Positions 37,901-63,980 of a DNA stretch of 64,000 nt are shown here, in pieces. How positions within the stretch are numbered: position 1 is the stretch's first letter; every line of letters starts with the position of its first letter. This DNA comes from Macrostomum lignano (taxonomy: Eukaryota), in assembly GCA_002269645.1 (NCBI GenBank), contig NIVC01000195.1:1-64000 (forward strand), given 5' to 3'. The notes beneath the pieces are model-generated. The model was not told the origin of the DNA. It searched no databases and saw nothing but the letters and a program-made list of their open reading frames with translations. The position numbers and the translations under genes were made by a program.

Positions 37901-39366
37901 GGAGCCGGCAGTGGACGAGATCGTTGGCGCCATGCTGATCTTGGCGAACTACGGCTTCTTCAGCCTGCAGACCCTCGTGGCCGCCGGGCCGCAGGCTCAG
38001 CCGCAGCCGCAACCACCCGGCCCCGTCGCCCTGCTGTCGCCTTCGCCGCACTCGTCATTCAGCCTCAGCCATGGCTCGCTGGCCGCCGCTCTGGCAGCCG
38101 CCGCAGCCGCCGGTCCGCCCCCGCCGCCTCCGCCGGACACGAGCGGCGCCGACTTTGCCATGTTCGCCTCCGGCACCGCCCCTCCGCCGCTGTTCGCCGA
38201 CGCCTTCATGGCCGACGGGACGGACAAAGCGGCGATGAGCGGCCCGATGGTGAAGCGGGAGCTGGACGTGCCGGAGCCGCTGATCGGCGCCCTGATCGGG
38301 CCGGGGGGCCGCGACATCAGCCAGCTGCAGACCAGCACGCAGACCTGCATCCAGGTCTCCCGCCGGGTCTCGGGCCCGACGCCTCTGTCGCACAGCCGCC
38401 TGGTGACCATCACCGGCATGCAGGTAGGATGAGTGCCCGGCCCAGCACTTCAACCGTTTGCTGCAACCGATTTCGATAATCTCAAGGAAGGACCAACCTC
38501 TAAGGCACAGAGTGTACATGCCAGGGCCGCTGTACACCCTGTGTGAGCGTGTGTCTGCGTACAGTATTGGCGCGCTTGCATGTGCTCAGGCTGGGCAGAA
38601 CTGCATGTGCTCAGGCTGGGCAGAACTGCATGTGCTCAGGCTGGGCAGAACTGCATGTGCTCATGTGCTCAGGATGGGCAGAACTGCATGTGCTCGTGTG
38701 CTCAGGATGGGCAGAACTGCATGTGCTCATGTGCTCAGGATGGGCAGAACTGCATGTGCTCATGTGCTCAGGCTGGGCAGAACTGCATGTGCTCATGTGC
38801 TCAGGATGGGCAGAACTGCATGTGCTCATGTGCTCAGGCTGGGCAGAACTGCATGTGCTCATGTGCTCAGGCTGGGCAGAACTGCATGTGCTCAGGCTGG
38901 GCAGAACTGCATGTGCTCAGGCTGGGCAGAACTGCATGTGCTCAGGCTGGGCAGAACTGCATGTGCTCATGTGCTCAGGATGGGCAGAACTGCATGTGCT
39001 CATGTGCTCAGGCTGGGCAGAACTGCATGTGCTCAGGCTGGGCAGAACTGCATGTGCTCATGTGCTCAGGCTGGGCAGAACTGCATGTGCTCATGTGCTC
39101 AGGCTGGGCAGATCTGCATGTGCTCATGTGCTCAGGATGGGCAGAACTGCATGTGCTCATGTGCTCAGGCTGGGCAGAACTGCATGTGCTCATTGGCTCA
39201 GGATGGGCAGAACTGCATGTGCTCATGTGCTCAGGATTCGCTCGCCTCCAAATCTCTCCACCTGAAATTCGCCCACCCGCAGCCGAACGTGTTGAAGGCG
39301 GAGCGCCTCATCCAGCAGAAGATCAGCCAGGCTGACCAGCGGCGCCAGCAGCACCGGTACCAGTGA
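28933..39366 (+). CDS. NOVA: Nova/pasilla family triple-KH RNA-binding splicing regulator, 5 coding exons
   Basis: Exons 28933-28975 ([14 protein letters not shown], inferred from phase match), 33984-34124 ([32 protein letters not shown] donor), 34571-34719 ([10 protein letters not shown]), 37431-38423 ([39 protein letters not shown]), 39283-39366 (..[10 protein letters not shown]). Confidence 0.92.
29204..29899. mobile_element. 696-bp MITE with 16-bp TIRs, 8-bp TSD and subterminal GTACGACA repeats (P/hAT-type)
   Basis: ccatagtgcggaagga .. tccttccgcactatgg; TSD actatata at 29196-29203 and 29900-29907. Confidence 0.9.
31121..31558. mobile_element. 438-bp P-element-like MITE
   Basis: 29-bp TIRs catagatactagaataactagataggcca / tggcctatctagttattctagtatctgtg; 8-bp TSD agtatgac/agtgtgac (1 mismatch). 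Confidence 0.85.
31690..31800 (+). repeat. CT-rich microsatellite in Nova intron 1
   Basis: Poly-pyrimidine ttctct runs. Confidence 0.8.
31933..32018. mobile_element. Small palindromic MITE-like remnant
   Basis: cccctcactttcatcttacaat .. attgtaaaacaaaagtgagggg imperfect inverted repeat. Confidence 0.45.
33175..33446. mobile_element. 272-bp Tc1/mariner-type MITE
   Basis: ~45-bp TIRs cactcagcaacatgttaaagtttccgccccaaaaccagtgg / ccactggctttggggtggaaactttaacatgttgctgagtg flanked by TA on both sides. Confidence 0.88.
34165..34515. repeat. 27-bp intronic minisatellite (ttcactgtgactgctgcctccctatca)n
   Basis: Fills Nova intron 2. Confidence 0.95.
35520..37045. repeat. ~20-22-bp intronic minisatellite (aaagtcaggatgccacaatcag)n
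   Basis: Nova intron 3; source of the MPQSESQD-type ORFs. Confidence 0.95.
38578..39235. repeat. 25/33-bp intronic minisatellite (gtgctcaggctgggcagaactgcat[gtgctcat])n
   Basis: Nova intron 4. Confidence 0.95.
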
Positions 39367-43242: not shown

Positions 43243-46200
43243 TCAGACATCATCAAAAAATCCGCCCCGCCCGCTGCCAGACTTGTAGGGCGGCGGCTGC
43301 TGGCGGAGCTGCTGCTGCTGTACGGCAGCTCTGGCCGACGGGAACAGCGGCTGCGTGTCGGCCTCGAACTCCACCGGCTCGCCGTCCGCCTGCAGCAGCC
43401 GCTCAAAGCGACTCGATCGCGGCGGCGACGGTGACAGCTCGGCGACAGGTGCCGCAGCAGCGCCGGCAGCCCCGGAGCTCCTGGGAAGCTGGCGCGCTGG
43501 CGGTGGCTTCCGCGCAAACAGCTCGTCCTCCTCGTCGCCGCTGTCGGTGCTTTTCAACAGGCCGCCAGTCGAGCTGCTGCCGCCGGGGCGCCGCGGCTAC
43601 GCCTGGCGCGCTCTGTGAAAAGTCGGTGGTTGGTGCGGGGCTTGGATTTCTCTTGATCTACGTCTACTAGCCACTACTAGGCATTACTAGCCACTACTAG
43701 GCACTACTAGGCACTACTAGCTACTATTAGCCACTACTAGCTACTTCTAGTCACTGCTAGCTACTACTAGCCACTACTAGGCAATACTAGCCACTACTAG
43801 GCTCAATTAGATAGCCACAATTAGATACTATTAGCCGCTACTAGCTACTACTAGTCCTTACTAGCCACTACTAAGCATTACTAGCCACTACTAGCTACTA
43901 TTGACCACCACTAGCTACTACTAGTCATTACTAGCCACTACTAAGCATTACTAGTCACTTACTAGCTACTATTAGCCACTACTAGCTACAGCTACTAGCC
44001 ACTACTAGCTACTATTAGCCACTAGTACCTACTATTGGCCACTACTAGCCCTTACTAGTCACTATTGAGCGTTACCAGCAATTGTCTCACCTCTGCGAAG
44101 CAGCAGTCGGCCCTCCTCCAGCAAGTCGGAGGTGAGCTCATCGTCCGAGCTGATGAACTGCTGCACGCCCAGGCAGTGCAGCAGGCGGCTGCCCAGCCGG
44201 AAGTAGCTGGCCAAGGCCAGCAACAGGATGGCGATGGGGAAGTACAGGTTGACACCATTGGAGATGATGGCCACGAGATCCAGATGGCCCATTAGCTGAG
44301 TGTAGGCCGTCTGCGCCTTCAACCCGCTGGCCAGGTGGGAGTCCAGGTGCACCAGGCCCAGGAAGTTCAGGCACAGCGGCGGGGTGAGCCGGCAGAACAG
44401 CATGCCGCTGAAGATGAGGCTGTTCTCGTCTGTCTGGTGGTTGGGCACCAGGCGGAAGTAGTTGAACAGCTTCAGGCGGAACACGGTGAAGTAGGTGCAG
44501 GCGCACAGGTAGCCGATGGCCAGCAGGCAGATCAGCTGCACCGACAGGGCGCCGCGGCCGGCCTGCACCAGCAGGGCCAGCGGGGTCAGCACCGGCCACT
44601 TAATAAAGAAGGTGCACTCGCACCACAGCATGAGGCCGGACGCGGCCAGCAGGAAGCAGGCGGCGCCGCGGAGCAGCCAGCTGCGGGCGTGGCACTTCCA
44701 GTAGAACTCCACGCCCGGGCCCAGCAGGCGCCGCAGGAGTCCGCCGCTTTCGCTATCGAAGTCGCCCTCGCCGCGACGGAAGAAGTGCAGCCGGGAGCCG
44801 CGGTTGGACTCGATGTCCTCCAGGAAGGCGGCCGAGGCGTAGGCCTCCTGGGACAGCGAGAATTGGGGCGGATTTTCGAATGGACTGAGAAATCTACTTA
44901 TTGAATACTGGATCCTTGGCCTCTCACCTTTAGAATCTCAGATTCTTGGCCTCTCACCTTTGGGATCAAATTCTAAGAAACAATTTAAACATTCGTATCC
45001 GACAAGAACTGAATGTCAGGAGAACAACAAATTAGCAGAAGCCCCAGCAACCCCCGCACCTGCAGCAGGCAGCGGCTCCGCTGCTCCAGGCCGATGGCCT
45101 TCTTTAGCTGGCAGTGCAGCTTCACCAGCCGCTTCGCTGTGAGGCCGCCGCCGTCCTCGTCTTCGTTTAGCCGCCGCCTGGCCGCCGCGATGGACGAAGC
45201 GGTCGGTTTGCCCCGGCCGAGCCCGGCGTCGCGTCCTCCGCAGTAGCCGCTGCTCTCGGCCAGCTCGGCCACTGTCCGGGCATTGGCAGCAAGCGGATGC
45301 TCCGGGCCGGGCACGCACTCGGCCAGCTGGACGGCCTCGGCGGCCAGGTCCTCCAGTTCCTCCTGGTGCTCGATGAGCTCCGAGTTGACCTTGGCCAGCC
45401 GGAAGTAGGCCCGCTTCAGGCTCTCGCCCGGACAGCCGGCGCTCCAGACGGTGCGGGGCAGCTCGACCAGGCCGTAGCCGAGGAACAGCACGATGAGCAC
45501 CAGGCCCCAGGTGTTGCTGGCCGTGATGCCGATCACGCGGAGCTGCGCACTGGAATTGTGGTCCGTTTCTTTTCATAGAATTACTAATTGGTAGCTACTC
45601 ACAGTGCTCAGATAGCTACTCACAGTGCTCAGGTAGCTACTCACACTGCTCAGATAGCTACTCAGTGCTCAGATAGCTACTCACAGTGCTCAGATAGCTA
45701 CTCACAGTGCTCAGGTAGCTACTCACAGTGCTCAGATAGCTACTCACAGTGCTCAGATAGCTACTCACAGTGCTCAGGTAGCTACTCAGTGCTCCTAGCT
45801 ATTTAGTGGCAGTAGCCCGATACTAAATAATTATAATCAAGGAGTTCAACTTACAAATCAATGTGAATGTCCGGTCTAGTGGCCACATAGATGAAGCAGA
45901 TGGCAAAGATGAGCAGGTAGGTCGAATAGTACAACGCATTGTCAACCAGGGAGGCCTTCACTTTGCCCAGGACGTTGAACTCGCCCGCCTTGGCGTAGGA
46001 CTGCATGATGGGCAAGAAAATCCTGGGGAAGAAATTGGTATGCTTGGTCACAAATCAAAGGATAAAAACCAGCTGCCAAATCCCAATAATGAGACATACA
46101 ATCCAGATTTCCGAATCGTACCTATGAGGTTCCAGACCCTGAAATCTCAACCAATTAGATACCAGACCCTGAAATCTCAACCAATTAGATACCAGACACT

Positions 46201-47187
46201 GAAATCTCAACCAATTAGATACCAGACCCTGAAATCTCAACCAATTAGATACCATACCCTGAAATCTCAACCAATTAGATACCAGACCCTGAAATCTCAA
46301 CCAATTAGATACCAGACCCTGAAATCTCAACCAATTAGATACCAGACCCTGAAATCTCAACCAATTAGATACCAGACCCTGAAATCTCAACCAATTAGAT
46401 ACCAGACCCTGAAATCTCAACCAATTAGATACCAGACCCTGAAATCTCAACCCAGGAGATACCAGACCCTGAAATCTCAACCCCAGACCCTGAAATCTCA
46501 ACCCAGGAGATACCATACCCTGAAATCTCAACGCATGAGAAACCCGACCCTGAAATCTCAACCCATGAGATACCAGACCCTGAAATCTCAACCCATGAGA
46601 TACCAGACCCTGAAATCTCAACCCATGAGATACCAGACCCTGAAATCTCAATCCATGAGATACCAGACCCTGAAATCTCAACGCATGAGATACCAAATCA
46701 CGAAAGCTTTACAAAGCAGCTCCTAGCATAACCATCTGGCATAACCAGGCCAGAAGCGAATAGGAACTAAACACACACCAGGTAAGGAACTGGCAGGACC
46801 AGTAGATGACGCGCCAGAAGCTGACCAGAAATGCCCTGGGAATATGGTTCCACGGCTCCCGGCAGGCTGGCGCAGAGGTGCCGTTGGCCTCCAGGCCGGA
46901 GACGTTGCTCATCAGGCAGTCCTCATAGAATGTCTGCGGGTTTGGTAACTCAGTGAGCTGGAATGCCTGCTGCATTTTATACTACTAAGCAGCCCATTGC
47001 TTACACAGTTGATGTCAGTAGGCAGTATGAAGACGATCAGAAAGCAGAACTGCCAGGCCAGAAATGTGACTCCGGTGACCACCAGCTGCTGCCTCCGCCA
47101 GTTGCCATAGTGATGCAGCAGAGAAGCTGTTAGCAAGACTACGCAGACAATTTCAAACAGCAGGAATGAGTAGCCAGCGCCTGACAT
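43243..47187 (-). CDS. LMBRD2: LMBR1-domain-containing protein 2, 6 coding exons, apparent 1-nt frameshift in last exon
   Basis: Exons 47187-47005 (MSGAGYSFLLFEIV..AWQFCFLIVFILPTD), 46933-46779, 46022-45855 (LPIMQSY..NALYY), 45549-45060 (ASNTWGL..GYGLVELPR), 44847-44091 (LVPNHQTDENSLIFSGMLFCRLTPPLCLNFLGL), 43612-43243 (..GGFFDDV*). Confidence 0.93.
43665..44060. repeat. ~10-bp intronic microsatellite (ctagccacta)n
   Basis: Fills LMBRD2 intron 5; short related copy near 42490. Confidence 0.95.
45588..45800. repeat. 21-bp intronic minisatellite (gtgctcagatagctactcaca)n
   Basis: LMBRD2 intron 3. Confidence 0.95.
46130..46695. repeat. 30-bp intronic minisatellite (accagaccctgaaatctcaaccaattagat)n
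   Basis: LMBRD2 intron 2; two unit variants arranged in blocks. Confidence 0.95.
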
Positions 47188-47723
47188 GGGGAGAGCTGAA
47201 ATTGGGTTTTAACAAATGTTTGATAGAAGCAGAGAATCTGCTGCTGCTGGTTGCTGTTACTGCTGCACAGCCAAGAATGCAACATACAGTCAGTCCCAGG
47301 CATCAAAGCAAGCCTATTATCAGCTAATTACAGAAGTCCTTGCACATAATATTTGCAGGTTAGAGAAAACCTTAAAATATGCATAATTGCGGTATACAAA
47401 TTACCAAAAATGTAGCAAATTAACAGTGATAAAATATAGAAGGGTATCCTAGCAAATACTAAAACATTATTAGCTAATAAAGATTGGTTTGGTTACTCTT
47501 AATCTATTAAAAAAATTATTATATTTAATTAATAGATTAATAGATTAAAAATTAAGAATAAAAAAACAAAAAGATTAATACATTTAAGGTTACATAATTT
47601 TTTTGTGTTGGTAGCAATGGAAAAAACCTAGAAGTCTACCTTGAAAAATATTATTGATTATATACATTACTTTTAAATTAGCATATTAATATTTTTATCA
47701 AAAAACCTGTAGCTAAACATATA

Positions 47724-48630
47724 CCAGGTCGTGCAAAAATGTAATGTTAGAAAATGTTTGTTAATATAAAGGGTGCTTCCCAGAACTATTTGAATCTGAT
47801 ATCGCCTGAAAGAATGCTATATAAGCTCTCAATTGATACCATTCTTGACTCAAATTACTTCCAGTTGTATGATTAAATGTCTAAGAAAAGAAAACAGATT
47901 GAACTCTTAGTCTGTGCCAAAAAGAATAATGAAGAAATCTTCAAGCTTGTTGGATGTTCAACTGTGTCTGTCTCAAGAGTGAAAAAGCTGATTTCTGATA
48001 AAGAAAGCTTGCTAGTAAAACTTGACCTGAATGTTGTCAAAGAGCAATTTGCTGACAATTTGACTGCCTCCATAAGCAGCCTGGCCAAGCAGAACAGTGT
48101 CAGTCAGTCAACAATGTCACAAGCAGTGAAAAGAGCTAGTGGAATTTCTCTACAACAATGTAAGCAGCCACTTCTGTCCCAAACTCAGCAAGATATACAA
48201 CTTAGCAAGCAAGAGCACTTCTAAACTTGTTGAAGCACACTCTAGCTGGTTGAGTCACTATTTTCTTGGATAAGAAAACTTTTACAGAGTCTGGATATCA
48301 ATCTGTTGGACTATACCCTGGATAGCATACCTAGTGGCACATCTCTAGCCAGGCCTACACTATATGCCACCCAAATGTAAATGCTCTAAAGGCTGCTATT
48401 AATGCAGCATAGATTGAGATGGACAAGGAGTACATCATCAAGATATTCTCCAGCTTCAGGGACTGTGTGGAGTAGGTCATTAGCACTGAAGGTGGTTATA
48501 TTGATTGAACACACTCATTAGACATAAAGTTATATTTGTGTTATTTTAGAAAGTTATAAGCTGAATAAATAAAAAGATAATTGCATTTCATGATAAAACT
48601 GCTTCACATTACATTTTGCATAATCCAATG
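47724..48630 (+). mobile_element. Decayed, internally deleted Tc1/mariner-superfamily (maT-like) transposon
   Basis: ORF 47877-48224 with HTH-like GCSTVSVSRVKK and SVSQSTMSQAVK; downstream fragments resembling DINLLDY and ISTEGGYID; degenerate TIRs (tgcaaaaatgtaatg / cattacattttgca) with TA flanks. Confidence 0.65.
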
Positions 48631-49632
48631 TAGAGGTCAGATAAAATAAAAGATTTAAGATCAAATGGGATTTTAGAATTGCTATTTTGGCAGTATCTGG
48701 GATTTAAAGATCAAGATCTCTCTAGTTCTACTAGCAAAGCACCATATATGCCATACTCCAGAAAGCATATATCATGCCAGAAATCATGCATTTGGTTTGG
48801 CCTAAAAATTGTCGCATGCATTGGCATGCATTCCACACTCCTGATTATGTAGTATATGCCCAAAAATTTGGGCGTGCATTGGCCTTGCATGCCAATTCCA
48901 AAATTAGACATGCAGAGTTAGCATGCATCACTCTAGAGAAAATAGTATGTATGCACACCTAGTGTGCACTTTAAAGAATCACATATAAGAGTTATTGGGA
49001 AGTTGAAAAAATATGAAAAAAGTTCATTTTTAAGTGCAAATTTCAAGCTTTCCAGTTTTTAAGCTTGTAATAGAGCACTTAAACAAATCTTTGCATGTAT
49101 AATTTTTTTGCTATACAAAGTATGCCAAAAAGCATAAAAAGCAACCAAATTATCTGGTAATAAGGGTCTATTACGTGATTTAAAAAAAGTTATTTTATTG
49201 TTGCAACGTAAAAAGGTCATTTATAGTTGTAACACCGGCATATTTTTGAGAATGGGCATGCACTACATTTTTTTTGTGTGCATTTGTAATTATTCAATTT
49301 TTGTTTGGGCCTGCACCCAGCATGATCCGGACTATGGCGTGCATTTGGGTATTGCATGCCAAAAGTAACATGTTGGCATGCTATGGCATGGTATAGCTAG
49401 CATAGAATGTGGCCTAGCATGATAGTAAGGCATGTTTTGTTGAGACAAAAGTTTGTGAAAAAAAACATGGAGTTGTGGAAACAAGAATTCATACTTATTT
49501 TTATTGCAAAATGACAAGTAAATTTTAATGTGCCAAAAAAGAAATATAGTATATTTGCATGCTATAGGCCCTAATAGTTTTAAAACAGTTAAAGACTTAG
49601 TGTGCATTTGCTTGGCACTGGCGTGCATCTAC

Positions 49633-49817
49633 CAGTGGCGCAACCAGGGGGGGGGGGGCAGGGGTGGTCCCCCCCCTTAGGCAGAGACCCAAAAAAAATC
49701 AAAGGGCGACCAAGCGAATTTTTGCCAAAAACAGAGCCACCCCTCCGCCCCCCTCCCCTCCCGGGACTTTACCCTCCAGAATCCGCCCCCCTCAAAAAAT
49801 TTCTGGTTGCGCTACTG
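49633..49817. mobile_element. 185-bp hAT-type MITE
   Basis: TIRs cagtggcgcaaccag / ctggttgcgctactg; 8-bp TSD gcatctac/gcatttac (1 mismatch); G/C-run interior. Confidence 0.85.
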
Positions 49818-52150
49818 GCATTTACTTGGTAGGCATGCTGCATGCATTGGTTCAGAGCATTCTGGTGTGCACTGTGCACTCAATTCAATATGATCCCGCC
49901 TATGGTATATATGAAAATCTCTATGCCTAATTTTAATTACAGTATAGAGTTTTTAAATATTACAAGTATTAAAGCTTAGTAAATACTATATACTATTACC
50001 CAAAATCAAAGAAGATAGGCCTATTTTCAAAATTTTGATTTTTTATGAATCTTTTCTCTTTTAAAATAGGTTAAAAAGTAGGCATATACATAATAATAAT
50101 AAAGTAAAAAATTAAATAAATATAAATATTAACAACAAGGTACTTAAACTGCCCAACTTTCCCATTCCCATATATTATTTATGAATATTTGGAATTTGGG
50201 TTTTGGACTAAAATATAATATGAAAATCTAGTTTTAGGTTATATACATAAACTGCCAATTGGATGCCACCGGCACGAGACTTTTAGCAAGTTTTACTATT
50301 CATATATTATTTAACAAAAATTTTTTAATTATTCATCGTCTCGCCCAAGCCAAAAAAGCTTTTGACCACCCAAGCCAACGGCCAACGCCAAGGGCATGAT
50401 TCCAGTGGTAAAAAATAGCTTTGACCCAAAATGTAGAGTTTTTACTTTCGTGTGAAGAATAGAATCAAACATCCACGAAATCCTGTTCACAAACAGCCTT
50501 AACTAATAAGTATAAAATAATAATTATTAGCTATTTGCGAGAAGGCACGGGCCTTTGGTCGATCGGAGTGTTGTGGCTAAGTTTAAGTTGGCGCAACTTT
50601 TCCTAGAATCTAATTATGGTTTGATTAAACGGATAATCCGTCTGGTGAGAACAGATTTAAGCTACAGAGAAGTCCAGGGTGAATGGTTAGTCAAATTGAG
50701 CAATGTAAGCTAATGCTGCGGCGCTGAAAGATTTACCGGTTGTCATAGTAATTCTAAGTAGAAGGTTCTTTATCTGATCTTCACATTCAGAATTAAGTTC
50801 TGTCGTTTTACTAGTAGTAAGCAGTTTAGCGCTAGATCACCCGTATTATGATTGAAGGAACTAATTATTTCCAGTTAATTGGGTTGATAATTGACAGATG
50901 ACATATTTTAAAACAAACGAGGGCTACTGCCTGCTGTGCAGTACGTGTGCATGGTGTTACTGTATCTCGCGTAGGTATTGTATAGCACAAAAACGGTTGC
51001 GTTTGCCTGTTCTTACGTGACTACACAAATGCCCGAATTGCAACCAAGATGATCGAATTAATAACACGCATGAGAGAAAACCTATCCATCAATTAATTGT
51101 TAGAATCTGGCTTCCAGTTTCTGTTTTTTAAAACCTCTGCTATTTCCGTGTCATTTTTATAAATTAGCATTTATCAATCAAATTAAAGCTAACGTTGGGT
51201 TGGGGATCGATGCCCTTTACGATGCTAGCTGTAGTTTTAGCCTTCATGGATCCGATAGCCATAAATCAGCATTAATCGAACTGGCTCCCTACTTATACAA
51301 AAGTCTGCAGCTCTGCCGATAAGCGACTCTGGAAATTAATGGGAATTGAAATGCTCGCGGCTGATAGGGGGATGGGGCCGTGCGCTCTAGCCGCTGCTGA
51401 TGTACGAAGAATGGTGGAATTTCCAATTGCAAGCTAGGCTTGCAGGTGCAAACATTTTATCGTGCAGTGGCTCTAGAAATCCTGCTCATCTAGAAAATCT
51501 CAAGCCGCCTTCTTGCACACGGCCCCTCCAAGCAGAAATGTATAACATTACCAACGGTTGACAAGCACACATGACAAGCACATGATAAGCATATTGAATT
51601 GCATGAAGCAAAACACCTGAGAACAAAGAAGAAATTTGAGTTTGCTTGGAATCAAGCCAAGTAAAGTAGCTCATAAAACACGTGGCTTTTTAAAGGGATG
51701 CATGCCAACTCATGCGATGCCAAGGGGCCAGTATAATAATTTCAGTTTATTTCTCCAACCCAGCGTCACAAAGATGTTCAATGCGGCACGATTTGCTTTG
51801 ATAATAAATCAGTAAACTGGTTACTCGGATTTCACACTGGCAGTGCGCATTTGTCTTGTTCATTTAGGTGCAAAGTCCAAAGTCCAGAGGGCCGCGGTCT
51901 CTATGGCAACAGGGCGCCCAAAAAGCCGCGCAGCATCTCGCGATCCTCATCGCACAGTCGACCCTCGTGAGCGGCTCTCTGCAAATTCGTTGTTCCGGTG
52001 AAGGCGTTCGAGTAGCACTCACGCAATGTCCATCAATTCCCTTTTAGTCACCGGTTCCACGCCCCTCTAATTCCAAACTAATCCGAATTCACGCGCGAAT
52101 TTCCTTAATCCCCATCTGCGTGACAGCCTGCTTCATAACTGCCAATTAGG

Positions 52151-52532
52151 CTATGATTGACTGGATTTGATTTTCTTTCTGGGCCCCATGACGCATGCCG
52201 GCAGCAGTCTCACCGCAACGGCTCCGAGGGCCTGCGCTGTGGCGGCGTCAATGGCGCAGACCTCCTGCTCCGAGGGCGACGGCTTCTTCAGGCGGAAGAA
52301 GTGGTAGCCCTTCTTCAGCCGAAAGATCTGGTGGCCGGAGTGGCCCTCCGCGCCCAGCTCGGCCGCCGCGGGATTCGCCACTGGAACAGCAGTAGGGCTA
52401 GGGTTAGGGTTACGGGTTAGGGGTTAGGGAATCGAATCGCAGGGCGAACTCACTGCGGGCTCGGGCGGTTGCCGAGTCGAGGCAGACAAGGCAGACGGTG
52501 GCGAACAGCAGGGCCGACAGGATTCCGTTCAT
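52151..52532 (-). CDS. Neuropeptide precursor (GHSGHQIFRL and GYHFFRL peptides; flatworm SPP-18/19-like), 2 coding exons
   Basis: Exon 52532-52454 MNGILSALLFATVCLVCLDSATARAR (signal peptide), phase-1 GTGAGT..TTCCAG intron 52453-52381, exon 52380-52151 MANPAAAELGAEGHSGHQIFRL-KK-GYHFFRL-KK-PSPSEQEVC..LPACVMGPRKKIKSSQS*. Confidence 0.85.
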
Positions 52533-55321
52533 GTTGTCGGTCTGGGCTTGAGTGTTCTGCAAAATTGGAACACGCTTGGACCGTGCACTGCACCATACAG
52601 GCATTGCCTGATTGCAGCTCTCAGTTTCAGCCAGTTTTAGCCCCCCATCCTGAGGCCTTGAGTTCCTTCTCGGCCACCAGCTGGCTGGGGAATGAATCCC
52701 TTCACGGGTGGGAATACTTAAAGAGGCGTCAGTCACTCTGAAGCAAGGCCTAAGAAAATTTCCTCGGAGATTCCCGCGCGAACGGGCGCCACTGTCTCCG
52801 AGGTGAAGCTGTGACTGACAAGCGGCAGAAGCAGCAGACAATGGTGGGGAAGACAATGCCGATGTGAAGGCACTTGGAAACTCAAAGATGCATACACGAC
52901 CCTTTCCATGGCTGGGGGGGGGGGTAGAGAACAGCTCAGCCTCGACTCTTGAAAATTACGAGGCATCAAAGGAGAACTTCTCAACTTTTCAGAGCTAGAG
53001 GAAAAAGCATGAATATGAAAGGCACGGGGATGAAGGGATAACAGGGAATATCTAATCCTGTCTCCAATTCTTCCTTGTCCGAGGCTGCCGGATCGATAAA
53101 GAGAAAAAGTGATGAGCGCCCGGCCCGGCTGGTTATCGCCGCTTCTCATCGGCCTCATCAGCCCGGCTGGCAGCTGCCCCCCCCCACGGCTCGTCATCTG
53201 AGATGAAGGAAGCTGGCTGCTCAGGGCGTGTAAGCTACATCACCGGTCAGCTCACTCCAAAAGCAGGTGCTGACTTATTCCGTATGAAGTCGACGGGGCC
53301 TCTCCCAGAGGCAAAAGAGATCGGGGAAATCTGTGATCATGAAAAATACAGGTGAGAGCGCCTGCAGCCTGGTGAGGATTATCCGGTAGAATTCCTCGGG
53401 GACCAGGCGTCAGACGAGAGCAGTCTGAAGAAGAATCGCAAACAATGTTGTCTGGGAGGTCAGGGGACCCCCCCCCCAAATGTGGACCCCGACCCGTTCC
53501 GGCAACAGGAACCGGAGACCGCAGCTGCCTACGCTGCCTCATCAAATTGATGAAGGCCAATGCTCTAACAGAAACAATGGACCAAATGCGTGACGAATTT
53601 TCCAACTATGCAGCACAATGGGCTGCATAGTTCTTCCTGGCGCTCCATGTGGTTGCAAGGAAGTAGTCCTGACTAATTGGGCCTGCGCCCCCCCCCCCGC
53701 GCCGCTGAGGCCAAGCAGCTCCCAGACTCACCCGGGTAGCTCTGTTGTTGCTGCAGGACGATGACGAGTCACCGACAATGAGGCAGGAGTTTTCAAGCGG
53801 TTCAGGAGTCCGGGGCTTGAGGCGAATTGCTCAACGGGGTGCGCAAGGAAGGCCGCGTCGGAGCCGCGGGTGCCCGACTTTATGGAGGCCGGGCTGCCCG
53901 GCTCGCATTGGCTGCGCCGGCCCGGCACCGGCCAGTGCAGGTGAGGCGCGCCCGCCCCGAGCAAATCCGCCCCAGCCCTTTGACTGACAGGCGCTGGCGC
54001 TCTGGGGGAAGCTGCTGCTTTCACTGCTGCTTCTTCGTTTCTGGAATTCCCGCCGGCTCTGGCCTGGCCGTGTCAAAGAGGTTGAAGCTGCCGCGGGGCC
54101 GTCGCCCCCCCCACCCCCACCCGAGGATTATACAGCGCAAAATATTCACAATGGGAGAAGTAAATAATTCAGCAGTTGCTCAACCTTTGACGCATTTCAA
54201 TCGGCCCTCCTCGCCCCGGGCTCGAGGCGTCGCGTCTCCATGGAGACTCCACGGAGCAGGGCGAACAGGCGGCTGGCACTGCAGGCATGGGGAGCCGGGG
54301 AAGGTTGGCAGGGCCCAACAGGCTTCTGGGCCCCAGAATGCGGAGGGAATTACAGCAGACTGGCAACTCTGTCAACGAGAGCAGGCCAGCGATGCTTGTA
54401 GGGCAAACAAAAGTGTTTTATTCGAGATCACGGGCCAGTATTTGAGCTGCCTCCCCCTCATTATCTTCCTTGGCTCTGCCCACTGCTCCCAAGCTTGTTT
54501 TGCCTCGCAATGCCGGGGTCAAAGCCAAGATTCCATGGCAGCTTCGGGGCTGGAAGCTGAATTGCAGATTTTATTTTTAGAACTGCTTCAACCAGTCCGT
54601 CTGCCTGGGACCATCGGGGCAGCTCAGCGCAGGCTCCCGAGTCCTACCGGTGCTCACCGCAACCAACTCTCTTCCCGTAAAATCACGCATGGCCTGGACC
54701 CCCGGGCGACTTCCGGTTCCGCGAGCTCTTCATCCGCAGCCGTGGTAATCCAGAAGTTTCAGCCTGATTGCCCGTTAAAAGCTAATGGGAGAACAATGGG
54801 ATGGCCGCGCGACTTGAGCCGATTTTGTGAAGAGGCTGGACGGGGCTGCATCAGGAATCGATGTCCAGGGAGTCTGGCACTATCTAATTCCCATCCTGCA
54901 GTTCCCCCCGGTGACCCACTTTGCAGGGTTCCATCGCGAGCTCAATGGGCACAGGTGAGCTGGGTTGGAGTGTCAGCTGATGACGAGGCGGAAGTCAGGA
55001 TTGCCAGTCTGACACCCCAGTCTCCCGCCCTGGATTGGGATTTAAGAGGGAGGACAATTTCGTGGGGAAAAGTTCTATGAAAGTTTTCATCATTTTCATA
55101 AATTAACGCATTCACTGCCTTTAAGCGACAGACGAGAACCAAGTTATGCTAAAATGAGCTGTGCACGTGTATTGAGTCCCCTGATACGGGGCTGGATAGA
55201 AGATGAAGCGAAGTAATTGCATTGGTAATTAAGTCGGCAGCATTACGGGTAATAAAAAACATTAATCAAATTAGTGATAATCTTTTCTGGATTCTTCATC
55301 CTGGCGTACCGTGCAGTATAG

Positions 55322-56765
55322 TGCCTACCCCATCCAGACCTACCCCATCCAGACCTACCCCATCCAGACCTACCCCATCCAGACCTACCCCATCCAGACC
55401 TACCCCATCCAGACCTACCCCATCCAGACCTACCCCATCCAGACCTACCCCATCCAGACCTACCCCATCCAGACCTACCCCATCCAGACCTACCCCATCC
55501 AGACCTACCCCATCCAGACCTACCCCCATCCAGACCTACCCCATCCAGACCTACCCCATCCAGACCTACCCCATCCAGACCTACCCCCATCCAGACCTAC
55601 CCCATCCAGACCTACCCCATCCAGACCTACCCCATCCAGACCTACCCCATCCAGACCTACCCCATCCAGACCTACCCCATCCAGACCTACCCCATCCAGA
55701 CCTACCCCATCCAGACCTACCCCATCCAGACCTACCCCCATCCAGACCTACCCCATCCAGACCTACCCCATCCAGACCTACCCCAACCAGACCTACCCCA
55801 TCCAGACCTACCCCATCCAGACCTACCCCATCCAGACCTACCCCATCCAGACCTACCCCATCCAGACCTACCCCATCCAGACCTACCCCATCCAGACCTA
55901 CCCCATCCAGACCTACCCCATCCAGACCTACCCCATCCAGACCTACCCCATCCAGACCTACCCCATCCAGACCTACCCCCATCCAGACCTACCCCATCCA
56001 GACCTACCCCATCCAGACCTACCCCCATCCAGACCTACCCCATCCAGACCTACCCCATCCAGACCTACCCCCATCCAGACCTACCCCATCCAGACCTACC
56101 CCATCCAGACCTACCCCCATCCAGACCTACCCCATCCAGACCTACCCCATCCAGACCTACCCCATCCAGACCTACCCCATCCAGACCTACCCCCATCCAG
56201 ACCTACCCCATCCAGACCTACCCCATCCAGACCTACCCCATCCAGACCTACCCCATCCAGACCTACCCCATCCAGACCTACCCCCATCCAGACCTACCCC
56301 ATCCAGACCTACCCCATCCAGACCTACCCCATCCAGACCTACCCCATCCAGACCTACCCCATCCAGACCTACCCCATCCAGACCTACCCCATCCAGACCT
56401 ACCCCATCCAGACCTACCCCATCCAGACCTACCCCATCCAGATCTACCCCATCCAGACCTACCCCATCCAGACCTACCCCAACCAGACCTACCCCATCCA
56501 GACCTACCCCATCCAGACCTACCCCATCCAGACCTACCCCATCCAGATCTACCCCCAGCCAGACCTACCCCATCCAGACCTACCCCATCCAGACCTACCC
56601 CCATCCAGACCTACTCCATCCAGACCTACCCCCATCCAGACCTACCCCATCCAGACCTACCCCATCCAGACCTACCCCATCCAGACCTACCCCAACCAGA
56701 CCTACCCCATCCAGACCTACCCCAACCAGACCTACCCCAACTAGACCTACCCCAACCAGACCTAC
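55322..56765. repeat. 15-bp minisatellite (cctaccccatccaga)n, roughly 95 units, just downstream of the RNF217-like stop
   Basis: Highly homogeneous tandem array; source of RPTPS/QTYPI/PDLPH ORFs. Confidence 0.97.
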
Positions 56766-56861
56766 CTCAGAGACCACAAAGAGAGTTTGGCCAATCAAAG
56801 GATAATGAAATAAAAAATCGGACAAAATGTACTGCCGGACATTCCCGATGCTCCGACAGAG

Positions 56862-58493
56862 TCATGGCAGTCTCTGCTCTCCCAGCTGCCGGCGCCGCCG
56901 CCTCTCCCTTACGGCCAGCAATGGCGCCCACACGGGGCTGGCGAGCAGCAGCAGCGGCGAGGCGGTGAGGGCGACGATGACAGCGCCGCCGATGCCGACG
57001 CCGAGTAGGCCTCGACGGATCGCGCGGCGAAGGCGCGGCCGGTCGGGCAGGAACTCGGCGCTGCAGCCGAACACGCTGAGCCGGGAGCTGTGGCCGCCCA
57101 GCAGCCGCCTGGGCAGCAGGCCGAAGTAGCGGCCCTCCTGCACGAGGCGCTTGCCGCACAGGTAGCAGAACTCCGTGCGGCACACCGTGCAGCTCACATA
57201 GCGGCAGCCGCCGTTCCGCTCGATCAGCGCCCGGCACTCCGGGCAGTGGCGCGCCCGACGACTCTCGGCGACCCCGGCGGCCTCCATGTCCGGGTCCGGG
57301 CGCATCTCGCGGCTCCAGGCGGTCAGCAGCTGGCCGTCCGAGTCGGCCGAGTCCGGGCACCGGCGGCCTGGGTGATGCGGCCCGTGGCAGGCGAAGCACC
57401 AGGCAAAGCCGCAGGCCTCGCACTCGACGTCGTTGACCCCGCTGTCCTGGTCGCGGCGGCAGACGTGGCCGCAGTCCGGGCAGGTCTTCGCGTCCGGCAG
57501 GCGCTCGGCGTCGGCCAGCAGCTGGTTGTACCGATGCAGCAGGTCCGGCCGGCCGCGCAGGCACAGCAGGCGAATCTCGTCGCGAGACAACAGGACCGGA
57601 CAGCTCGGACAGCCCACGTACGGCCGGCCCTTGGCCAGGGCGAAGCGCGTGTGGTCGGCCAGGCAGGCGGAGCAGCCCAGGAGGCGGCAGCAGCGGCGCT
57701 GGCGCACCAGGACGCTCTCGGCGAAGCAGATGCCGCACTCGCCGATGCTGATCGAACTGGGCAGGTCGCGGAAAGAGGACGCGAAGCGGTCGAGGTAATA
57801 ATCCAGGCAGGCCGCGGCGCGCAGGTCGCACACTTGGCGCCTCTCAGTCGAGCTGAACAGCAGCGAGAACTCGTAGGGCAGCGCGCCGGCTGGCGACGCC
57901 TCGAGCAGCGCCCGCATCTTGTCGCGTAGGTGAGCGCTGACGCCGCCCGCCTGGAAGAGGCTGGGCAGGTGGGCGCCGAGCGCCCGGTCGAAGGCGGCCT
58001 TGTCGAAGCGGGCCAGGCAGCTGCGACCGCTGCTGTCGAATTCCACTAGCAGTGGGTCCAGGCCCGCCGGCTCAGCCTCTGCTGTAGCCTCTGGAATTGC
58101 TGCTTCTGGAATTGCAGCTTCTGGAATTGCTGCTTCTGGAATTGCTGCTTCTGGAATTGCAGCTTCTGGAATTGCTGCTTCTGGAATTGCTGCTTCTGGA
58201 ATTGCAGCTTCTGGAATTGCTGCTTCTGGAATTGCAGCTTCTGGAATTGGTGCTTCTGGAATTGGTGCTTCTGCAATTGGTGCTTCTGAAATTGGTGCTT
58301 CTGGAATTGGTGCTTCTGCTTCTGCTTCTCCTGTAGTTTCTTCTTCCGCCGCTGCATCAGCAGCCGCCGCTTGACTCACAGACTCCAGAGGCCCTGCATC
58401 GTCGTAGTTGCTCACTCGGTCACCCCGATCAGCTTCTGAAGACGGCTTGGTCTCTTCCAGAGCGCGCAGAGATCTCGCAGCCTCCGAGACCAT
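56862..58493 (-). CDS. RNF217: RBR (RING-IBR-RING) E3 ubiquitin ligase with C-terminal TM segment, RNF217-like, intronless CDS
   Basis: ATG at 58493 (MVSEAAR). RING1 CGIC..CC..CSAC..CPSC, IBR CPDC..CEAC..WCFAC..HHPGRRC, RING2 CPEC..GGCRYVSCTVC..FCYLC, then HSSRLSVFGC..LPDRPRLRR motif typical of RNF217 and a hydrophobic tail. Confidence 0.9.
   Translation of the reverse strand: MVSEAARSLRALEETKPSSEADRGDRVSNYDDAGPLESVSQAAAADAAAEEETTGEAEAEAPIPEAPISEAPIAEAPIPEAPIPEAAIPEAAIPEAAIPEAAIPEAAIPEAAIPEAAIPEAAIPEAAIPEAAIPEATAEAEPAGLDPLLVEFDSSGRSCLARFDKAAFDRALGAHLPSLFQAGGVSAHLRDKMRALLEASPAGALPYEFSLLFSSTERRQVCDLRAAACLDYYLDRFASSFRDLPSSISIGECGICFAESVLVRQRRCCRLLGCSACLADHTRFALAKGRPYVGCPSCPVLLSRDEIRLLCLRGRPDLLHRYNQLLADAERLPDAKTCPDCGHVCRRDQDSGVNDVECEACGFAWCFACHGPHHPGRRCPDSADSDGQLLTAWSREMRPDPDMEAAGVAESRRARHCPECRALIERNGGCRYVSCTVCRTEFCYLCGKRLVQEGRYFGLLPRRLLGGHSSRLSVFGCSAEFLPDRPRLRRAIRRGLLGVGIGGAVIVALTASPLLLLASPVWAPLLAVRERRRRRQLGEQRLP
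58080..58325 (-). repeat. Coding 15-bp tandem repeat (PEAAI/PEAPI)n inside the RBR ligase
   Basis: tctggaattgctgct units in frame with the RBR ORF. Confidence 0.9.
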
Positions 58494-59019
58494 CGCCTCA
58501 GAGCGCGATTCGGTGCTATGGCTACAGCTGAGCAGTGCAGTGCGAGCCCTCACCCACAGCCGTACCTAATAAGCAACGCCCAGAGCCCCGTCCAAGTTTC
58601 GTATTGACAAGAGCTGCGCACCGGGTCTATTTTTAGACATGGCCAGCTTGTTTCAAAAATGGGCGCGCGTACAATCAACTGCGCGACCTTGGTTACAGAG
58701 TCAGCGCACTCGGTGAGTGCACCGCTGCGGTGTACATGCAGCGGTGAGAAAGAGGGAGAGAGAGAGAGAGAGTGGAAAGGAGAGAAGTCTCGCCCGCTGA
58801 GTTTCAAGTGTTAAATATCAGATTTGCTTTTTACGTCTGATATGGCTTTGCCAAATTAAGAAAATTGTTTTCATTTCTACCTTCTAGAGAATTCAAAATG
58901 ACATAACTGGCTCACAAATTGACTAAGTTTCACTCCCTTTGACGCATTTCCACACTTGAGTCACACAGGATCAAGATTCTGAATCTCAATATTAGATATA
59001 TAGATTTCATCTGTGAATG

Positions 59020-61305
59020 TGTTGGAAGTGGATTGTGAATGGGTTGGCGCTAGATTGTGAATGGGTTGGCGCTGGATTTTGAATGGGTTGGAGCTGGATT
59101 GTGAATGGGTTGGAGCTGGATTGTGAAGAGCTGGATTGTGAATGGGTTGGAACTGGATTGTGAAAGGGTTAGAACTGGATTGTGAAAAAGTTGGAACTGG
59201 ATTGTGAATGAGTTAGAACTGGATTGTGAATAAGTTGGAACTGGATTGTGAATAGGTTGGAATTGGATTGTAAATGGGTTGGAGCTGGATTGTGAATGGG
59301 TTGGAGCTGGATTGTGAATGGGTTGGAGCTGGATTGTGAATGGGTTGGAACTGGATTGTGAATGGGTTGGAGCTGGATTGTGAAGAGCTGGATTGTGGAT
59401 GGGTTGGAGCTGGATTGTGAATGGGTTGGAGCTGGATTGTGAATGGGTTGGAACTGGATTGTGAATGGGTTGGAGCTGGATTGTGAATAGGTTGGAACTG
59501 GATTGTGAATTGGTTGGCGCTGGATTGTGAATGGGTTGAAGCTGGATTGTGAATGGGTTGGAACTGGATTGTGAATGGGTTGGAGCTGGATTGTGAATGG
59601 GTTGGAGCTGGATTGTGAATGGGTTAGAACTGGATTGTGAATAGGTTGGAGCTGGATTGTGAATGGGTTGGAGCTGGATTGTGAATGGGTTGGAGCTGGA
59701 TTGTGAATGGGTTGGAGCTGGATTGTGAATGGGTTGGAACTGGATTGTGAATTGGTTGGAACTGGATTGTGAATGGGTTGGAGCTGGATTGTGAATGGGT
59801 TGGAACTGAATTGTGAATGGGTTGGAACTGGATTGTGAAGAGCTGGATTGTGAATGGGTTGGAGCTGGATTGTGAAGAGCTGGATTGTGAATGGGTTGGA
59901 GCTGGATTGTGAATGGGTTGGAACTGGATTGTGAATGGGTTTGAACTGGATTGTGAATGGGTTGGAGCTGGATTGTGAATTGGTTGGAACTGGATTGTGA
60001 ATGGGTTGGAGCTGGATTGTAAGTGGGTTGGAGCTGGATTGTGAAAGGGTTGGAACTGGATTGTGAGTGGGTTGGAGCTGGATTGTGAATGGGTTGGAGC
60101 TGGATTGTGAGTGGGTTGGAGCTGGATTGTGGATGGGTTGGAGCTGGATTGTGAATGGGTTGGAGCTGGATTGTGAGTGGGTTGGAGCTGGATTGTGAAT
60201 TGGTTGGAACTGGATTGTGAGTGGGTTGGAGCTGGATTGTGAGTGGGTTGGAGCTGGATTGTGGATGGGTTGGAGCTGGATTGTGAATGGGTTGGAACTG
60301 GATTGTGAATAAGTTGGAACTGGATTGTGAATAAGTTTGAACTGGATTGTGAATAAGTTTGAACTGGATTGTGAATAAGTTTGAACTGGATTGTGAATAA
60401 GTTTGAACTGGATTGTGAATAAGTTGGAACTGGATTGTGAGTGGGTTGGAGCTGGATTGTGAATGGGTTGGCGCTGGATTGTGAATTGGTTGGAACCGGA
60501 TTGTAAATGGGTTAGAACTGGATTGTGAATAGGTTGGAACTGGATTGTGAATGGGTTGGAGCTGGATTGTGAATAGGTTGGAATTGGATTGTAAATGGGT
60601 TGGAACTGGATTGTGGATGCGTTGGCGCTTGATTGTGAAGAGCTGGATTGTGAATGGGTTGGAGCTGGGTTGTGAATGGGTTGGAACTGGATTGTGAAAG
60701 GGTTAGAACTGGATTGTGAAAGGGTTAGAACTGGATTGTGAATAAGTTGGAACTGGATTGTGAATGAGTTAGAACTGGATTGTGAATAAGTTGGAACTGG
60801 ATTGTGAATGGGTTGGAGCTGGATTGTGAATAGGTTGGAATTGGATTGTAAATGGGTTGGAGCTGGATTGTGAATGGGTTGGAGCTGGATTGTGAATGGG
60901 TTGGAACTGGATTGTGAAGAGCTGGATTGTGAATGGGTTGGAGCTGGATTGTGAATGGGTTGGAGCTGGATTGTGAAGAGCTGGATTGTGAATGGGTTGA
61001 AGCTGGATTGTGAATGGGTTGGAGCTGGATTGTGAATGGGTTGGAGCTGGATTGTGAATGGGTTGGACCTGGATTGTGAATGGGTTGGAGCTGGATTGTG
61101 AATGGGTTGGAGCTGGATTGTGAATGGGTTGGAGCTGGACTGTGAGTGGGTTGGAGCTGGATTGTGAATGGGTTGGAGCTGGATTGTGAATGGGTTGGAG
61201 CTGGATTGTGAATGGGTTGGAGTTGGATTGTGAGTGGGTTGGAGCTGGATTGTGAATGGGTTGGAGCTGGATTGTGAATGGGTTGGAGCTGGATTGTGAA
61301 TGGGT
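59020..61305. repeat. 22-bp minisatellite (tggattgtgaatgggttggagc)n
   Basis: About 2.3 kb array upstream of RNF217-like. Confidence 0.97.
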
Positions 61306-61659
61306 TGCAGCAGCAGAGGGAGGCAGCAGGTGTTTCAGTACCCAGAGTCTAAGTAGGCAGGTGCTATTTATAACTCTGCGAAAGCAGAAGACAAAAGGGG
61401 AGGCAAGAAAGAGACAAAGCGAAAGCTGAAGTGCTCGGGCTGTTTTGCATCGCCCAGCCACAGTTGCGGATCTGCATTCGCAGCTGTATTGGGTTCCAAT
61501 CTTGCTGACGGAGCCTGAGAGCTGGAACTCTCAGCAGAGCAGTTTCTGATTTTACGAGCGGCAGGAGGGCCGCTAAAATGCGAAAATTGCAGCGATGGCT
61601 AAACTTGAGACGCAAGAGCTGCACTTCTGTGAGGGGGAAAGCTCACTCATTCTGTGCAG

Positions 61660-63055
61660 GGAGACTGGGTGTGTAATGGAGTAGACTGGGTGTGCAATGT
61701 AGTAGGCTGGGTGTGCAGTGATGTAGGCTGGGTGTGCAGTGATGTAGGCTGGGTGTGCAGTGGAGTAGGCTGGGTGTGCATTGGAGTAGGCTGGGTGTGC
61801 AATGGAGTAGGCTGGGTGTGCAGTGGAGTAGACTGGGTGTGCAGTGGAGTAGGCTGGGTGTGCATTGGAGTAGGCTGGGTGTGCAATGGAGTAGGCTGGG
61901 TGTGCAGTGGAGTAGACTGGGTGTGCAGTGGAGTAGACTGGGTGTGCAGTGGAGTAGACTGGGTGTGCAGTGGAGTAGACTGGGTGTGCATTGGAGTAGG
62001 CTGGGTGTGCAGTGGAGTAGACTGGGTGTGCATTGGAGTAGGCTGGGTGTGCAGTGGAGTAGGCTGGGTGTGCAATGGAGTAGGCTGGGTGTGCAGTGGA
62101 GTAGGCTGGGTGTGCAGTGATGTAGGCTGGGTGTGCAGTGGAGTAGACTGGGTGTGCAGTGGAGTAGACTGGGTGTGCAATGGAGTAGGCTGGGTGTGCA
62201 TTGGAGTAGGCTGGGTGTGCAATGGAGTAGGCTAGGTGTGCATTGGAGTAGGCTGGGTGTGCAGTGGAGTAGGCTGGGTGTGCAGTGGAGTAGGCTGGGT
62301 GTGCATTGGAGTAGGCTGGGTGTGCAGTGGAGTAGGCTGGGTGTGCAGTGGAGTAGGCTGGGTGTGCAGTGGAGTAGACTGGGTGTGCAGTGGAGTAGAC
62401 TGGGTGTGCAATGGAGTAGGCTGGGTGTGCAGTGGAGTAGACTGGGTGTGCAATGGAGTAGGCTGGGTGTGCAGTGGAGTAGGCTGGGTGTGCAGTGGAG
62501 TAGGCTGGGTGTGCAGTGATGTAGGCTGGGTGTGCAGTGATGTAGGCTGGTTGTGCAGTGGAGTAGGCTGGGTGTGCAATGGAGTAGGCTGGGTGTGCAG
62601 TGATGTAGGCTGGGTGTGCAGTGATGTAGACTGGGTGTGCAGTGATGTAGGCTGGGTGTGCAGTGGAGTAGGCTGGGTGTGCAATGGAGTAGGCTGGGTG
62701 TGCAGTGATGTAGGCTGGGTGTGCAGTGGAGTAGGCTGGGTGTGCATTGGAGTAGGCTAGGTGTGCAGTGGAGTAGACTGGGTGTGCAATGGAGTAGACT
62801 GGGTGTGCAGTGGAGTAGACTGGGTGTGCATTGGAGTAGGCTAGGTGTGCAGTGGAGTAGACTGGGTGTGCAATGGAGTAGACTGGGTGTGCAGTGGAGT
62901 AGGCCCAGTGGAGTAGACTGGGTGTGCAAAGGAGTAGGCTAGGTGTGCAGTGGAGTAGACTGGGTGTGCAGTGGAGTAGGCGCAGTGGAGTAGGCGCAGT
63001 GGAGTAGACTGGGTGTGCAGTGGAGTAGGCTGGGTGTGCAGTGGAGTAGACCAGG
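61660..63055. repeat. 21-bp minisatellite (agtggagtaggctgggtgtgc)n
   Basis: About 1.4 kb array; source of LHCTPSL/QWSRLGV ORFs. Confidence 0.97.
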
Positions 63056-63638: not shown

Positions 63639-63980
63639 TCAACTGTTTTTACCGGCGGCAGCTTTGAGAGCCGCGGGCAGGCAGGTGTAGCTGGCCAGCC
63701 GCTCGCGGTGCGCCCGGTCCTGCACCCCGATGCGCTGCAGCTCCGCGTCCGTCAGGCCCTGCGCCTGCGACACGGTGGCCACGCCGGCCGCCTCGAACAG
63801 CTGGGTGTACTGGCCGAGCTGCAGGCAGGCGAGCCACTCCGCCAGCGTCGCCGGCCGCGACAGCGTCTCGTACTCGATGGGCAGCGAGGCCGGCGCCGCC
63901 GCGCTCCGCTCCAAGCTGTCGGTGGCGCCAACGGTGATCGCGGAGGCAGTGGCGCCCGCGCTCATCTGGCGGCGCGGCAC
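63639..63980 (-). CDS. Terminal exon of a protein with a C-terminal SAM domain; rest of gene beyond window end
   Basis: Acceptor cccgcag at 63981-63982; TLAEWLACLQLGQYTQLFEAAGV..LTDAELQRIGVQDRAHRERL is a canonical SAM signature. Confidence 0.85.
   Translation of the reverse strand: MPRRQMSAGATASAITVGATDSLERSAAAPASLPIEYETLSRPATLAEWLACLQLGQYTQLFEAAGVATVSQAQGLTDAELQRIGVQDRAHRERLASYTCLPAALKAAAGKNS

Follow-up and report, generated by a model that had tools for sequence, protein, structure and literature searches.

Within the window, that is, the whole stretch of 64,000 nucleotides analysed herein (positions 1 to 64,000 of the Macrostomum lignano contig NIVC01000195.1, assembly GCA_002269645.1), the minus strand carries at 51901..52532 the gene BOX15_Mlig013730, which in our assessment very probably comprises one non-coding and three coding exons and encodes a 107-aa flatworm 'FRL-containing' preprohormone (Table 1). 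The spliced three-exon product, ending in ...RLCDEDREMLRGFLGALLP, is letter-identical to the GenBank entries PAA71739.1 and PAA88328.1 ('hypothetical protein BOX15_Mlig013730g3/g1'), as found in a collection of 15 billion proteins, and the GenBank CDS of Mlig013730 on NIVC01000195.1 has the same coordinates as our model. Sequence, gene model and database identity are thereby demonstrated. The locus was already known to GenBank as an unnamed protein; it is a new, or at any rate hitherto unnamed, member of the FRL family, an assignment that is correct as judged by sequence and gene structure. The annotation of this assembly (Mlig_3_7) was produced with StringTie, TACO and de novo transcriptome assembly, with ORFs called by TransDecoder (PMC5730564). 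Since it was built from RNA-seq and transcriptome assemblies, both coding splice junctions are transcript-backed, and the transcription of Mlig013730 can be deduced from the way in which the annotation was made.

Table 1. Features of the Mlig013730 locus, in coordinates of the window.
Feature	Position	Strand	Remarks
Non-coding 5' exon (5'UTR)	53773..54000, upstream limit at least 54000	-	UniProt A0A1I8HZR7 mapping; donor GTGACT starts at 53772
5'UTR intron, ~1216 nt	52557..53772	-	GTGACT...TTTTGCAG; inferred from A0A1I8HZR7 mapping and splice motifs
Exon: 24 nt of 5'UTR and coding exon 1	52454..52556	-	ATG at 52532; encodes MNGILSALLFATVCLVCLDSATARAR and the first base of codon 27
Intron 1, 73 nt, phase 1	52381..52453	-	GTGAGT...TTCCAG
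Coding exon 2, codons 27-82	52214..52380	-	(M)ANPAAAELGAEGHSGHQIFRL-KK-GYHFFRL-KK-PSPSEQEVCAIDAATAQALGAVA
GHSGHQIFRL, codons 39-48, core of the first predicted peptide	52316..52345	-	GHQIFRL identical to planarian SPP-19
GYHFFRL, codons 51-57	52289..52309	-	KK on either side: 52310-52315, 52283-52288
Intron 2, 235 nt, phase 0	51979..52213	-	GTGAGA...TTTGCAG; position and phase as in Mlig008027
Coding exon 3	51901..51978	-	RAAHEGRLCDEDREMLRGFLGALLP and stop TAG 51903-51901; holds Cys91 and the tail motif
AATAAA polyadenylation signal, motif match only	51746..51751	-	~150 nt past the stop; the sole one in 200 nt downstream

Gene model and sequence context

An earlier note on this DNA, made from the letters and a list of their open reading frames, had described the precursor as invisible in the ORF track and confined it to 52151-52532; GenBank lists the hypothetical protein at the locus, and the real extent adds the 5'UTR exon (at least 54000 to 53773), exon 3 and the AATAAA at 51751. 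The phase 1 splice that the note proposed from 52454 to 52380 (GTGAGT..CAG) is needed to obtain PAA71739.1 and is present in the transcript-derived GenBank CDS. Coding exon 1 spans 79 nt (52532-52454) and ends in phase 1, while the GTGAGA donor of intron 2 lies at 52213, directly after codon 82, and its TTTGCAG acceptor ends at 51979. The UniProt entry A0A1I8HZR7 (191 aa), another model of Mlig013730, begins with 76 residues of translated UTR; these map to 54000-53773 at 97% identity and then jump to 52556, and we therefore assign to Mlig013730 a first exon that is non-coding and a UTR intron of 1.2 kb. Within intron 1 (52381-52453) lies a degenerate telomere-like (CCCTAA)n run, CCCTAACCCCTAACCCGTAACCCTAACCCTAGCCCTA; on the plus strand it takes the form (TTAGGG)n.

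Several other features were recognized in the window. Minisatellites are extraordinarily dense throughout (65 TRF rows, the arrays comprising 28-107 copies of units of 15-42 nt, e.g., 55324-56766, 59012-61311, 61665-63049, 35529-37043 and 14662-15403), giving rise to numerous spurious long ORFs on either strand. AT-rich blocks (26000-34000 and 46000-52000; 31-40% GC) are set within sequence of 50-66% GC; the second adjoins the prohormone gene, and an ORF at 47877-48224 resembles a helix-turn-helix or transposase fragment. On the minus strand lie an intronless G-protein beta subunit gene (3988-5028; 346 aa, the identical protein occurring on three assembly contigs), an LMBR1-domain gene (43554-47190; 604 aa, called in the NIVC01000195.1 gene list) and the SAM-domain end of a SHIP-like inositol phosphatase (63639-63980), identified through a sister contig; a KH-domain RNA-binding protein ORF is found on the plus strand (37380-38432). 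Moreover, 56862-58553 (minus strand) holds an intact 563-codon ORF with IBR/RBR E3-ligase domains, 97% identical to BOX15_Mlig024448g1 of the sister contig; the NIVC01000195.1 gene list has no gene called there, and the product from the first ATG has no database record.

Membership in the FRL family

Collins et al. (2010, PMC2953531) grouped the planarian genes Smed-spp-18, spp-19 and grh-1 as 'FRL-containing', detected by mass spectrometry GYHFFRL (SPP-18, SPP-19) as well as KHIGHQIFRL and HQIFRL (SPP-19), all non-amidated, and described AYHFFRL in the schistosome homologue npp-28. The planarian peptides GYHFFRL and KHIGHQIFRL, named in the earlier note, agree with that report; the note makes no mention of the GnRH-like precursor grh-1, also a family member. 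Planarian spp-18 and spp-19 are expressed in discrete populations of neurons, which depend on the COE transcription factor.

The similarity to flatworm prohormones is clear, as BLASTP against Smed-spp-19 gave E=1e-12 and, over GHQIFRLK[KR]GYHFFRL[KR]K, identity at 18 of 20 residues, which is far beyond chance, and the family alignment covers the FRL cassette through the C-terminus. In an alignment of nine sequences K49, H53, F55, R56, L57, C68, C91 and D94 are invariant; with 15 sequences only H53, F55 and C68 are, K49, F54, R56, C91 and D94 being conserved in at least 90%. Mlig013730 possesses [GA]YHFFRL with dibasic flanks and no amidation Gly, the upstream peptide xGHQ[IM]FRL with its dibasic site that is typical of the spp-19/grh-1 subtype, three coding exons, the two introns of which lie past the signal-peptide region (phase 1) and within the Cys loop (phase 0), and, in the three-exon product only, the tail motif C-x-x-D-[RK]-x-[FLM]-[LI], here CDEDREML (C68, C91, D94). 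This full-length match, which extends to the two Cys, the C-x-x-D-[RK] tail and the exon-intron structure, bears out the earlier proposal that the gene encodes a secreted member of the planarian SPP-18/SPP-19 prohormone family; membership in the family and the conservation of the gene structure are demonstrated.

Two profile searches, one of 5.8 billion proteins and one run exhaustively against 1.84 billion cluster representatives, returned matches of which every one with a named source was a flatworm protein. They comprise three genes of the triclad Schmidtea, many trematode proteins, proteins of the cestodes Spirometra/Sparganum, and a polyclad protein, the 'gonadotropin-releasing hormone-2' of Stylochoplana, in which QNMHFSNGWQPGKR is followed by FRL peptides. 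In M. lignano five paralogue groups were found (Mlig008027, Mlig013730, Mlig024884, Mlig034597 and Mlig016149/021558), labelled as hypothetical or with spurious UniProt domain names. Since neither profile search recovered a non-flatworm GnRH/corazonin precursor, including those of molluscs and annelids, the FRL cassette appears to be flatworm-specific.

Predicted processing of the precursor

The spliced protein reads ...ATARAR-M-ANPAAAELGAEGHSGHQIFRL-KK-GYHFFRL-KK..., with GHSGHQIFRL-KK at residues 39-50 and KK-GYHFFRL-KK at residues 49-59; a repeat of two 27-nt units detected by TRF at 52283-52336 spans both FRL-KK units. Neither KK is preceded by Gly, as the earlier note had stated. Its further claim that both peptides are flanked by KK holds on both sides for GYHFFRL, but for GHSGHQIFRL only on the C-terminal side: the Mlig013730 protein has no dibasic site N-terminal to this peptide, only R-A-R at residues 24-26, and its N-terminal limit probably extends to M27 or A21. 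The candidate masses of this first peptide are 2277.12 (MANPAAAELGAEGHSGHQIFRL) and 2903.48 (ATARAR...FRL), and that of GYHFFRL as the free acid is 938.48 ([M+H]+ 939.48). As judged from hydrophobicity and the (-3,-1) rule, the N-terminus has the make-up of a signal peptide: an MNG n-region is followed by a hydrophobic core (residues 4-18; Kyte-Doolittle values reaching 2.95), and a candidate cleavage site, approximate in position, comes after S20.

We infer that the Mlig013730 product is processed and secreted, that it is expressed in neurons and that it serves in signalling. The signal peptide (about residues 1-20) would send the precursor to the secretory pathway and be removed near S20, after which a prohormone convertase would cleave at K49-K50 and K58-K59 and a carboxypeptidase would trim the lysines. 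Three products would result: an N-terminally extended ...GHSGHQIFRL, its N-terminus fixed by signal-peptide cleavage or at R-A-R; the heptapeptide GYHFFRL, which like the first would bear a free, non-amidated C-terminus; and, from P60 to P107, a C-terminal peptide of 48 residues for which a helix-turn-helix is predicted, probably closed by a Cys68-Cys91 disulfide. The short FRL peptides presumably are neuropeptides acting on a receptor.

AlphaFold2, run with the nine-sequence alignment, places a helix at residues 2-28, leaves the FRL peptide stretch disordered (pLDDT about 50-60) and predicts residues 70-100 with a pLDDT of 93-94 as a helix-turn-helix (helices 72-86 and 92-105), a picture that fits excised linear peptides together with a folded, probably disulfide-stapled associated domain. 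One could also imagine that this disulfide-bonded C-terminal domain is the main functional product, a small protein hormone, the FRL peptides being spacer by-products, as it is the sole confidently folded part and its two Cys and its Asp vary little or not at all across the family. We regard this as highly improbable, given that the most conserved stretch of the family is [GA]YHFFRL, above the tail, that it has dibasic flanks in every member, and that the FRL heptapeptide accumulates as a discrete peptide in planarians; moreover, both products may be active, so that the two views are not mutually exclusive.

Relation to GnRH/corazonin-like precursors

Mlig008027 (PAA94807.1 and copies), the M. 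lignano counterpart of planarian grh-1 and of the polyclad 'GnRH-2' BCO16381.1, consists of a signal peptide, QQFHFSHG(VN)GWKPGKR, GLAEEGHAGHQIFRL, KK, GYHFFRL, KK and the Cys tail. It is 48% identical to Mlig013730 overall, with a near-identical cassette EGH[AS]GHQIFRLKKGYHFFRLKK and the same C-x22-C tail, but it has a KR ahead of GLAEEGHAGHQIFRL-KK, an upstream site that Mlig013730 lacks. When mapped on NIVC01000001.1, Mlig008027 proved to have introns of identical position and phase: intron 1 (phase 1) lies 12 codons ahead of GH[AS]GHQIFRL, and intron 2 (phase 0) lies 14 residues past Cys1 and 8 before Cys2. In Mlig008027 intron 1 interrupts the GnRH-like peptide, the codons round it reading ...QQFHFSHGVN|GWKPGKRGLAEE, as compared with ...ATARAR|MANPAAAELGAE in Mlig013730. 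The GnRH-like peptide is present in Mlig008027, planarian grh-1 and polyclad BCO16381.1; the pattern pQ-x-[FY]-H-F-S-x-G-W-x-P followed by G-K-R after the signal peptide is absent from Mlig013730, which at that position has ATARARMANPAAAELGAE, with no Gln start, Trp or GKR.

Because Mlig013730 and Mlig008027 have in common the FRL cassette, the Cys tail and the positions of both introns, and judging also from planarian grh-1 and the polyclad protein, we conclude that Mlig013730 is a derivative of a GnRH/corazonin-like precursor and not a GnRH precursor itself. It has lost the GnRH-like peptide and the GKR site (MANPAAA vs. GWKPGKR) and kept the FRL peptides and the Cys tail, and this loss may be independent of that in planarians.

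The copies of Mlig008027 (NIVC01000001.1, 4001-4877 of the mapped stretch) include forms predicting QQFHFSHGVNGWKPG (g1, g2, g4) and QQFHFSHGWKPG (g6), of which the shorter looks like a canonical lophotrochozoan peptide. An origin of the two forms from an alternative donor 9 nt upstream was excluded: the site is GA and not GT in copy g1, and the difference therefore lies between gene copies.

Gene copies and constraint

The M. lignano genome is in a highly redundant, duplicated state (PMC5730564), with which the three copies of Mlig013730 fit. The copy on NIVC01001143.1 is identical over all 632 nt, and the 107-aa gene is called there too. In the third (g2, NIVC01000194.1) the CDS differs at 3 of 324 nt, with a single amino-acid change (L106F) and no difference in exon 2 (0/167), as compared with 6 of 309 nt in the introns and 132 of 3037 in the flanks; all three intron-1 differences fall within the 73-nt intron. 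The ORF and the splice sites are kept in all three copies. These differences are consistent with coding constraint, although the counts are too small for proof or for a meaningful dN/dS (3 coding differences).

In such a redundant genome, with five paralogue groups and with the position of the GnRH-like peptide and GKR degenerate, Mlig013730 might be a second copy of the GnRH-like precursor gene in the course of decay, transcribed and devoid of a signalling role. There seems to be little chance of this, since none of the three copies shows damage to the ORF, the signal peptide, either KK-flanked peptide, either Cys or any splice site, and GYHFFRL and GHQIFRL are unchanged in comparison with planarians despite the deep divergence. 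Furthermore, precursors without the GnRH-like peptide (spp-18, spp-19, npp-28) are the common flatworm form, and their peptides were detected by mass spectrometry.

The third coding exon

The earlier note had described a product of ~103 aa (actually 102 aa) by following exon 2 to the TAG at 52151, and had thereby read into intron 2 as coding. Its C-terminal peptide with two Cys is real in that the protein has two (C68 and C91), but since exon 3 supplies the actual C-terminus, the tail VRLLPACVMGPRKKIKSSQS and the second Cys named in the note are intron sequence. The exon-3 tail resembles the family ending (Sma-npp-28 ...IVCPEDREFLGL, spp-19 ...NLCGSDKSFLAELASLL). Among 2640 six-frame fragments of the window, a full-family HMM built from non-Macrostomum members only placed exon 2 at the top (E=4.7e-5), with the exon-3 fragment next, and a tail-only HMM, likewise of non-Macrostomum members, ranked the exon-3 fragment first (E=0.15). 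With the full-family HMM the three-exon product scored 31.7 bits (E=6e-12, single comparison) vs. 23.0 for the two-exon product; the 102-aa product used as a single-sequence search query gave no match at E<=10. Hence, the match to the family tail, the HMM ranks and scores, the conserved introns and the identity with the 107-aa GenBank protein support a third coding exon.

There is hardly any prospect that the 102-aa form, with intron 2 retained up to TAG 52153-52151 and ending ...VRLLPACVMGPRKKIKSSQS, is the main product: the frame does stay open for 20 more codons beyond the GTGAGA donor, giving a second Cys, and a retained-intron isoform would also release both FRL peptides, but the 102-aa protein is not in the 15-billion-protein collection, in which the 107-aa form is the GenBank entry, it scores 8.7 bits lower with the family HMM and is devoid of the conserved C-x-x-D-[RK] tail, and intron 2 keeps its position and phase in Mlig008027 and Schistosoma.

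Discussion

We herein provide a functional name for the GenBank 'hypothetical protein' Mlig013730 and for four more paralogue groups of M. lignano. The FRL/npp-28 family thus reaches the early-branching Macrostomorpha with its peptide cores unchanged; the earlier note had proposed an extension to this lineage, but M. lignano is itself a flatworm and the extension stays within Platyhelminthes. Moreover, our results add gene-structure evidence that FRL-only precursors derive from GnRH/corazonin-like precursors. For flatworm neuropeptide biology these findings are incremental and do not amount to a new kind of system.

It is conceivable, and we put it forward with somewhat more doubt than conviction, that the FRL peptides, which occupy the 'associated peptide' region, constitute an autonomous flatworm-wide signalling system with its own receptor, retained repeatedly after loss of the GnRH-like peptide; such retention would have taken place in Mlig013730, and perhaps independently in planarians and parasites. 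If this autonomous system exists, M. lignano, with five paralogue groups and available transgenesis, would offer a tractable setting for finding the receptor of peptides shared with parasites. The same FRL peptides occur in schistosomes, liver flukes and tapeworms. In the open literature searched, the HFFRL motif appeared in Collins et al. (2010) alone, and no paper naming a receptor was found; given this, along with the sharing of the peptides by parasites, a transgenesis-ready free-living model should be useful for receptor identification. The same search yielded nothing on FRL peptides or on Mlig013730/Mlig008027 beyond Collins et al. (2010), and the only other mention of npp-28 was in an S. 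mansoni protein-library table. A 2026 paper on M. lignano mentions only the KEGG 'GnRH pathway', and a 2026 review of polyclad neuropeptides mentions GnRH/corazonins, with FRL peptides absent.

Comparison with known precursors

Lophotrochozoan GnRH/corazonin-type precursors are defined by a pQ...W...amide peptide, which is absent from Mlig013730. Smed-spp-19 (GU295186) shares with Mlig013730 the signal peptide, xxGHQIFRL, a dibasic site, GYHFFRL, a further dibasic site and the two-Cys tail ending in C-x-x-D-[RK]-x-[FL]-L. The two heptapeptide cores do not differ between them, and both precursors are without a GnRH-like peptide and without an amidation Gly. They differ in that spp-19 has a KR ahead of the first peptide, where grh-1 likewise has a dibasic site and Mlig013730 has none, in the Cys loop (C-x20-C vs. 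C-x22-C in Mlig013730), and in a 5-residue insertion before Cys1 that Mlig013730 has in common with Mlig034597 and not with spp-19. To judge from the C-x22-C loop and this insertion, Mlig013730 seems nearer to paralogues within M. lignano, for instance Mlig034597 (42% identity); since these paralogues look closest, we claim no one-to-one orthology with planarian spp-19, the architecture of which may have arisen independently in M. lignano.

Like Mlig013730, npp-28 of Schistosoma (Smp_043650) and its homologues in trematodes and cestodes possess a signal peptide and a dibasic-flanked [AG]YHFFRL, and their two-Cys tail is CPEDREFLGL-like, as compared with CDEDREML. The parasite genes encode one FRL peptide only, with no GHQIFRL unit, and have a shorter Cys loop (C-x18-C) and a shorter tail; S. 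mansoni npp-28 nevertheless has, as does Mlig013730, three coding exons with introns of phases 1 and 0 at equivalent places.
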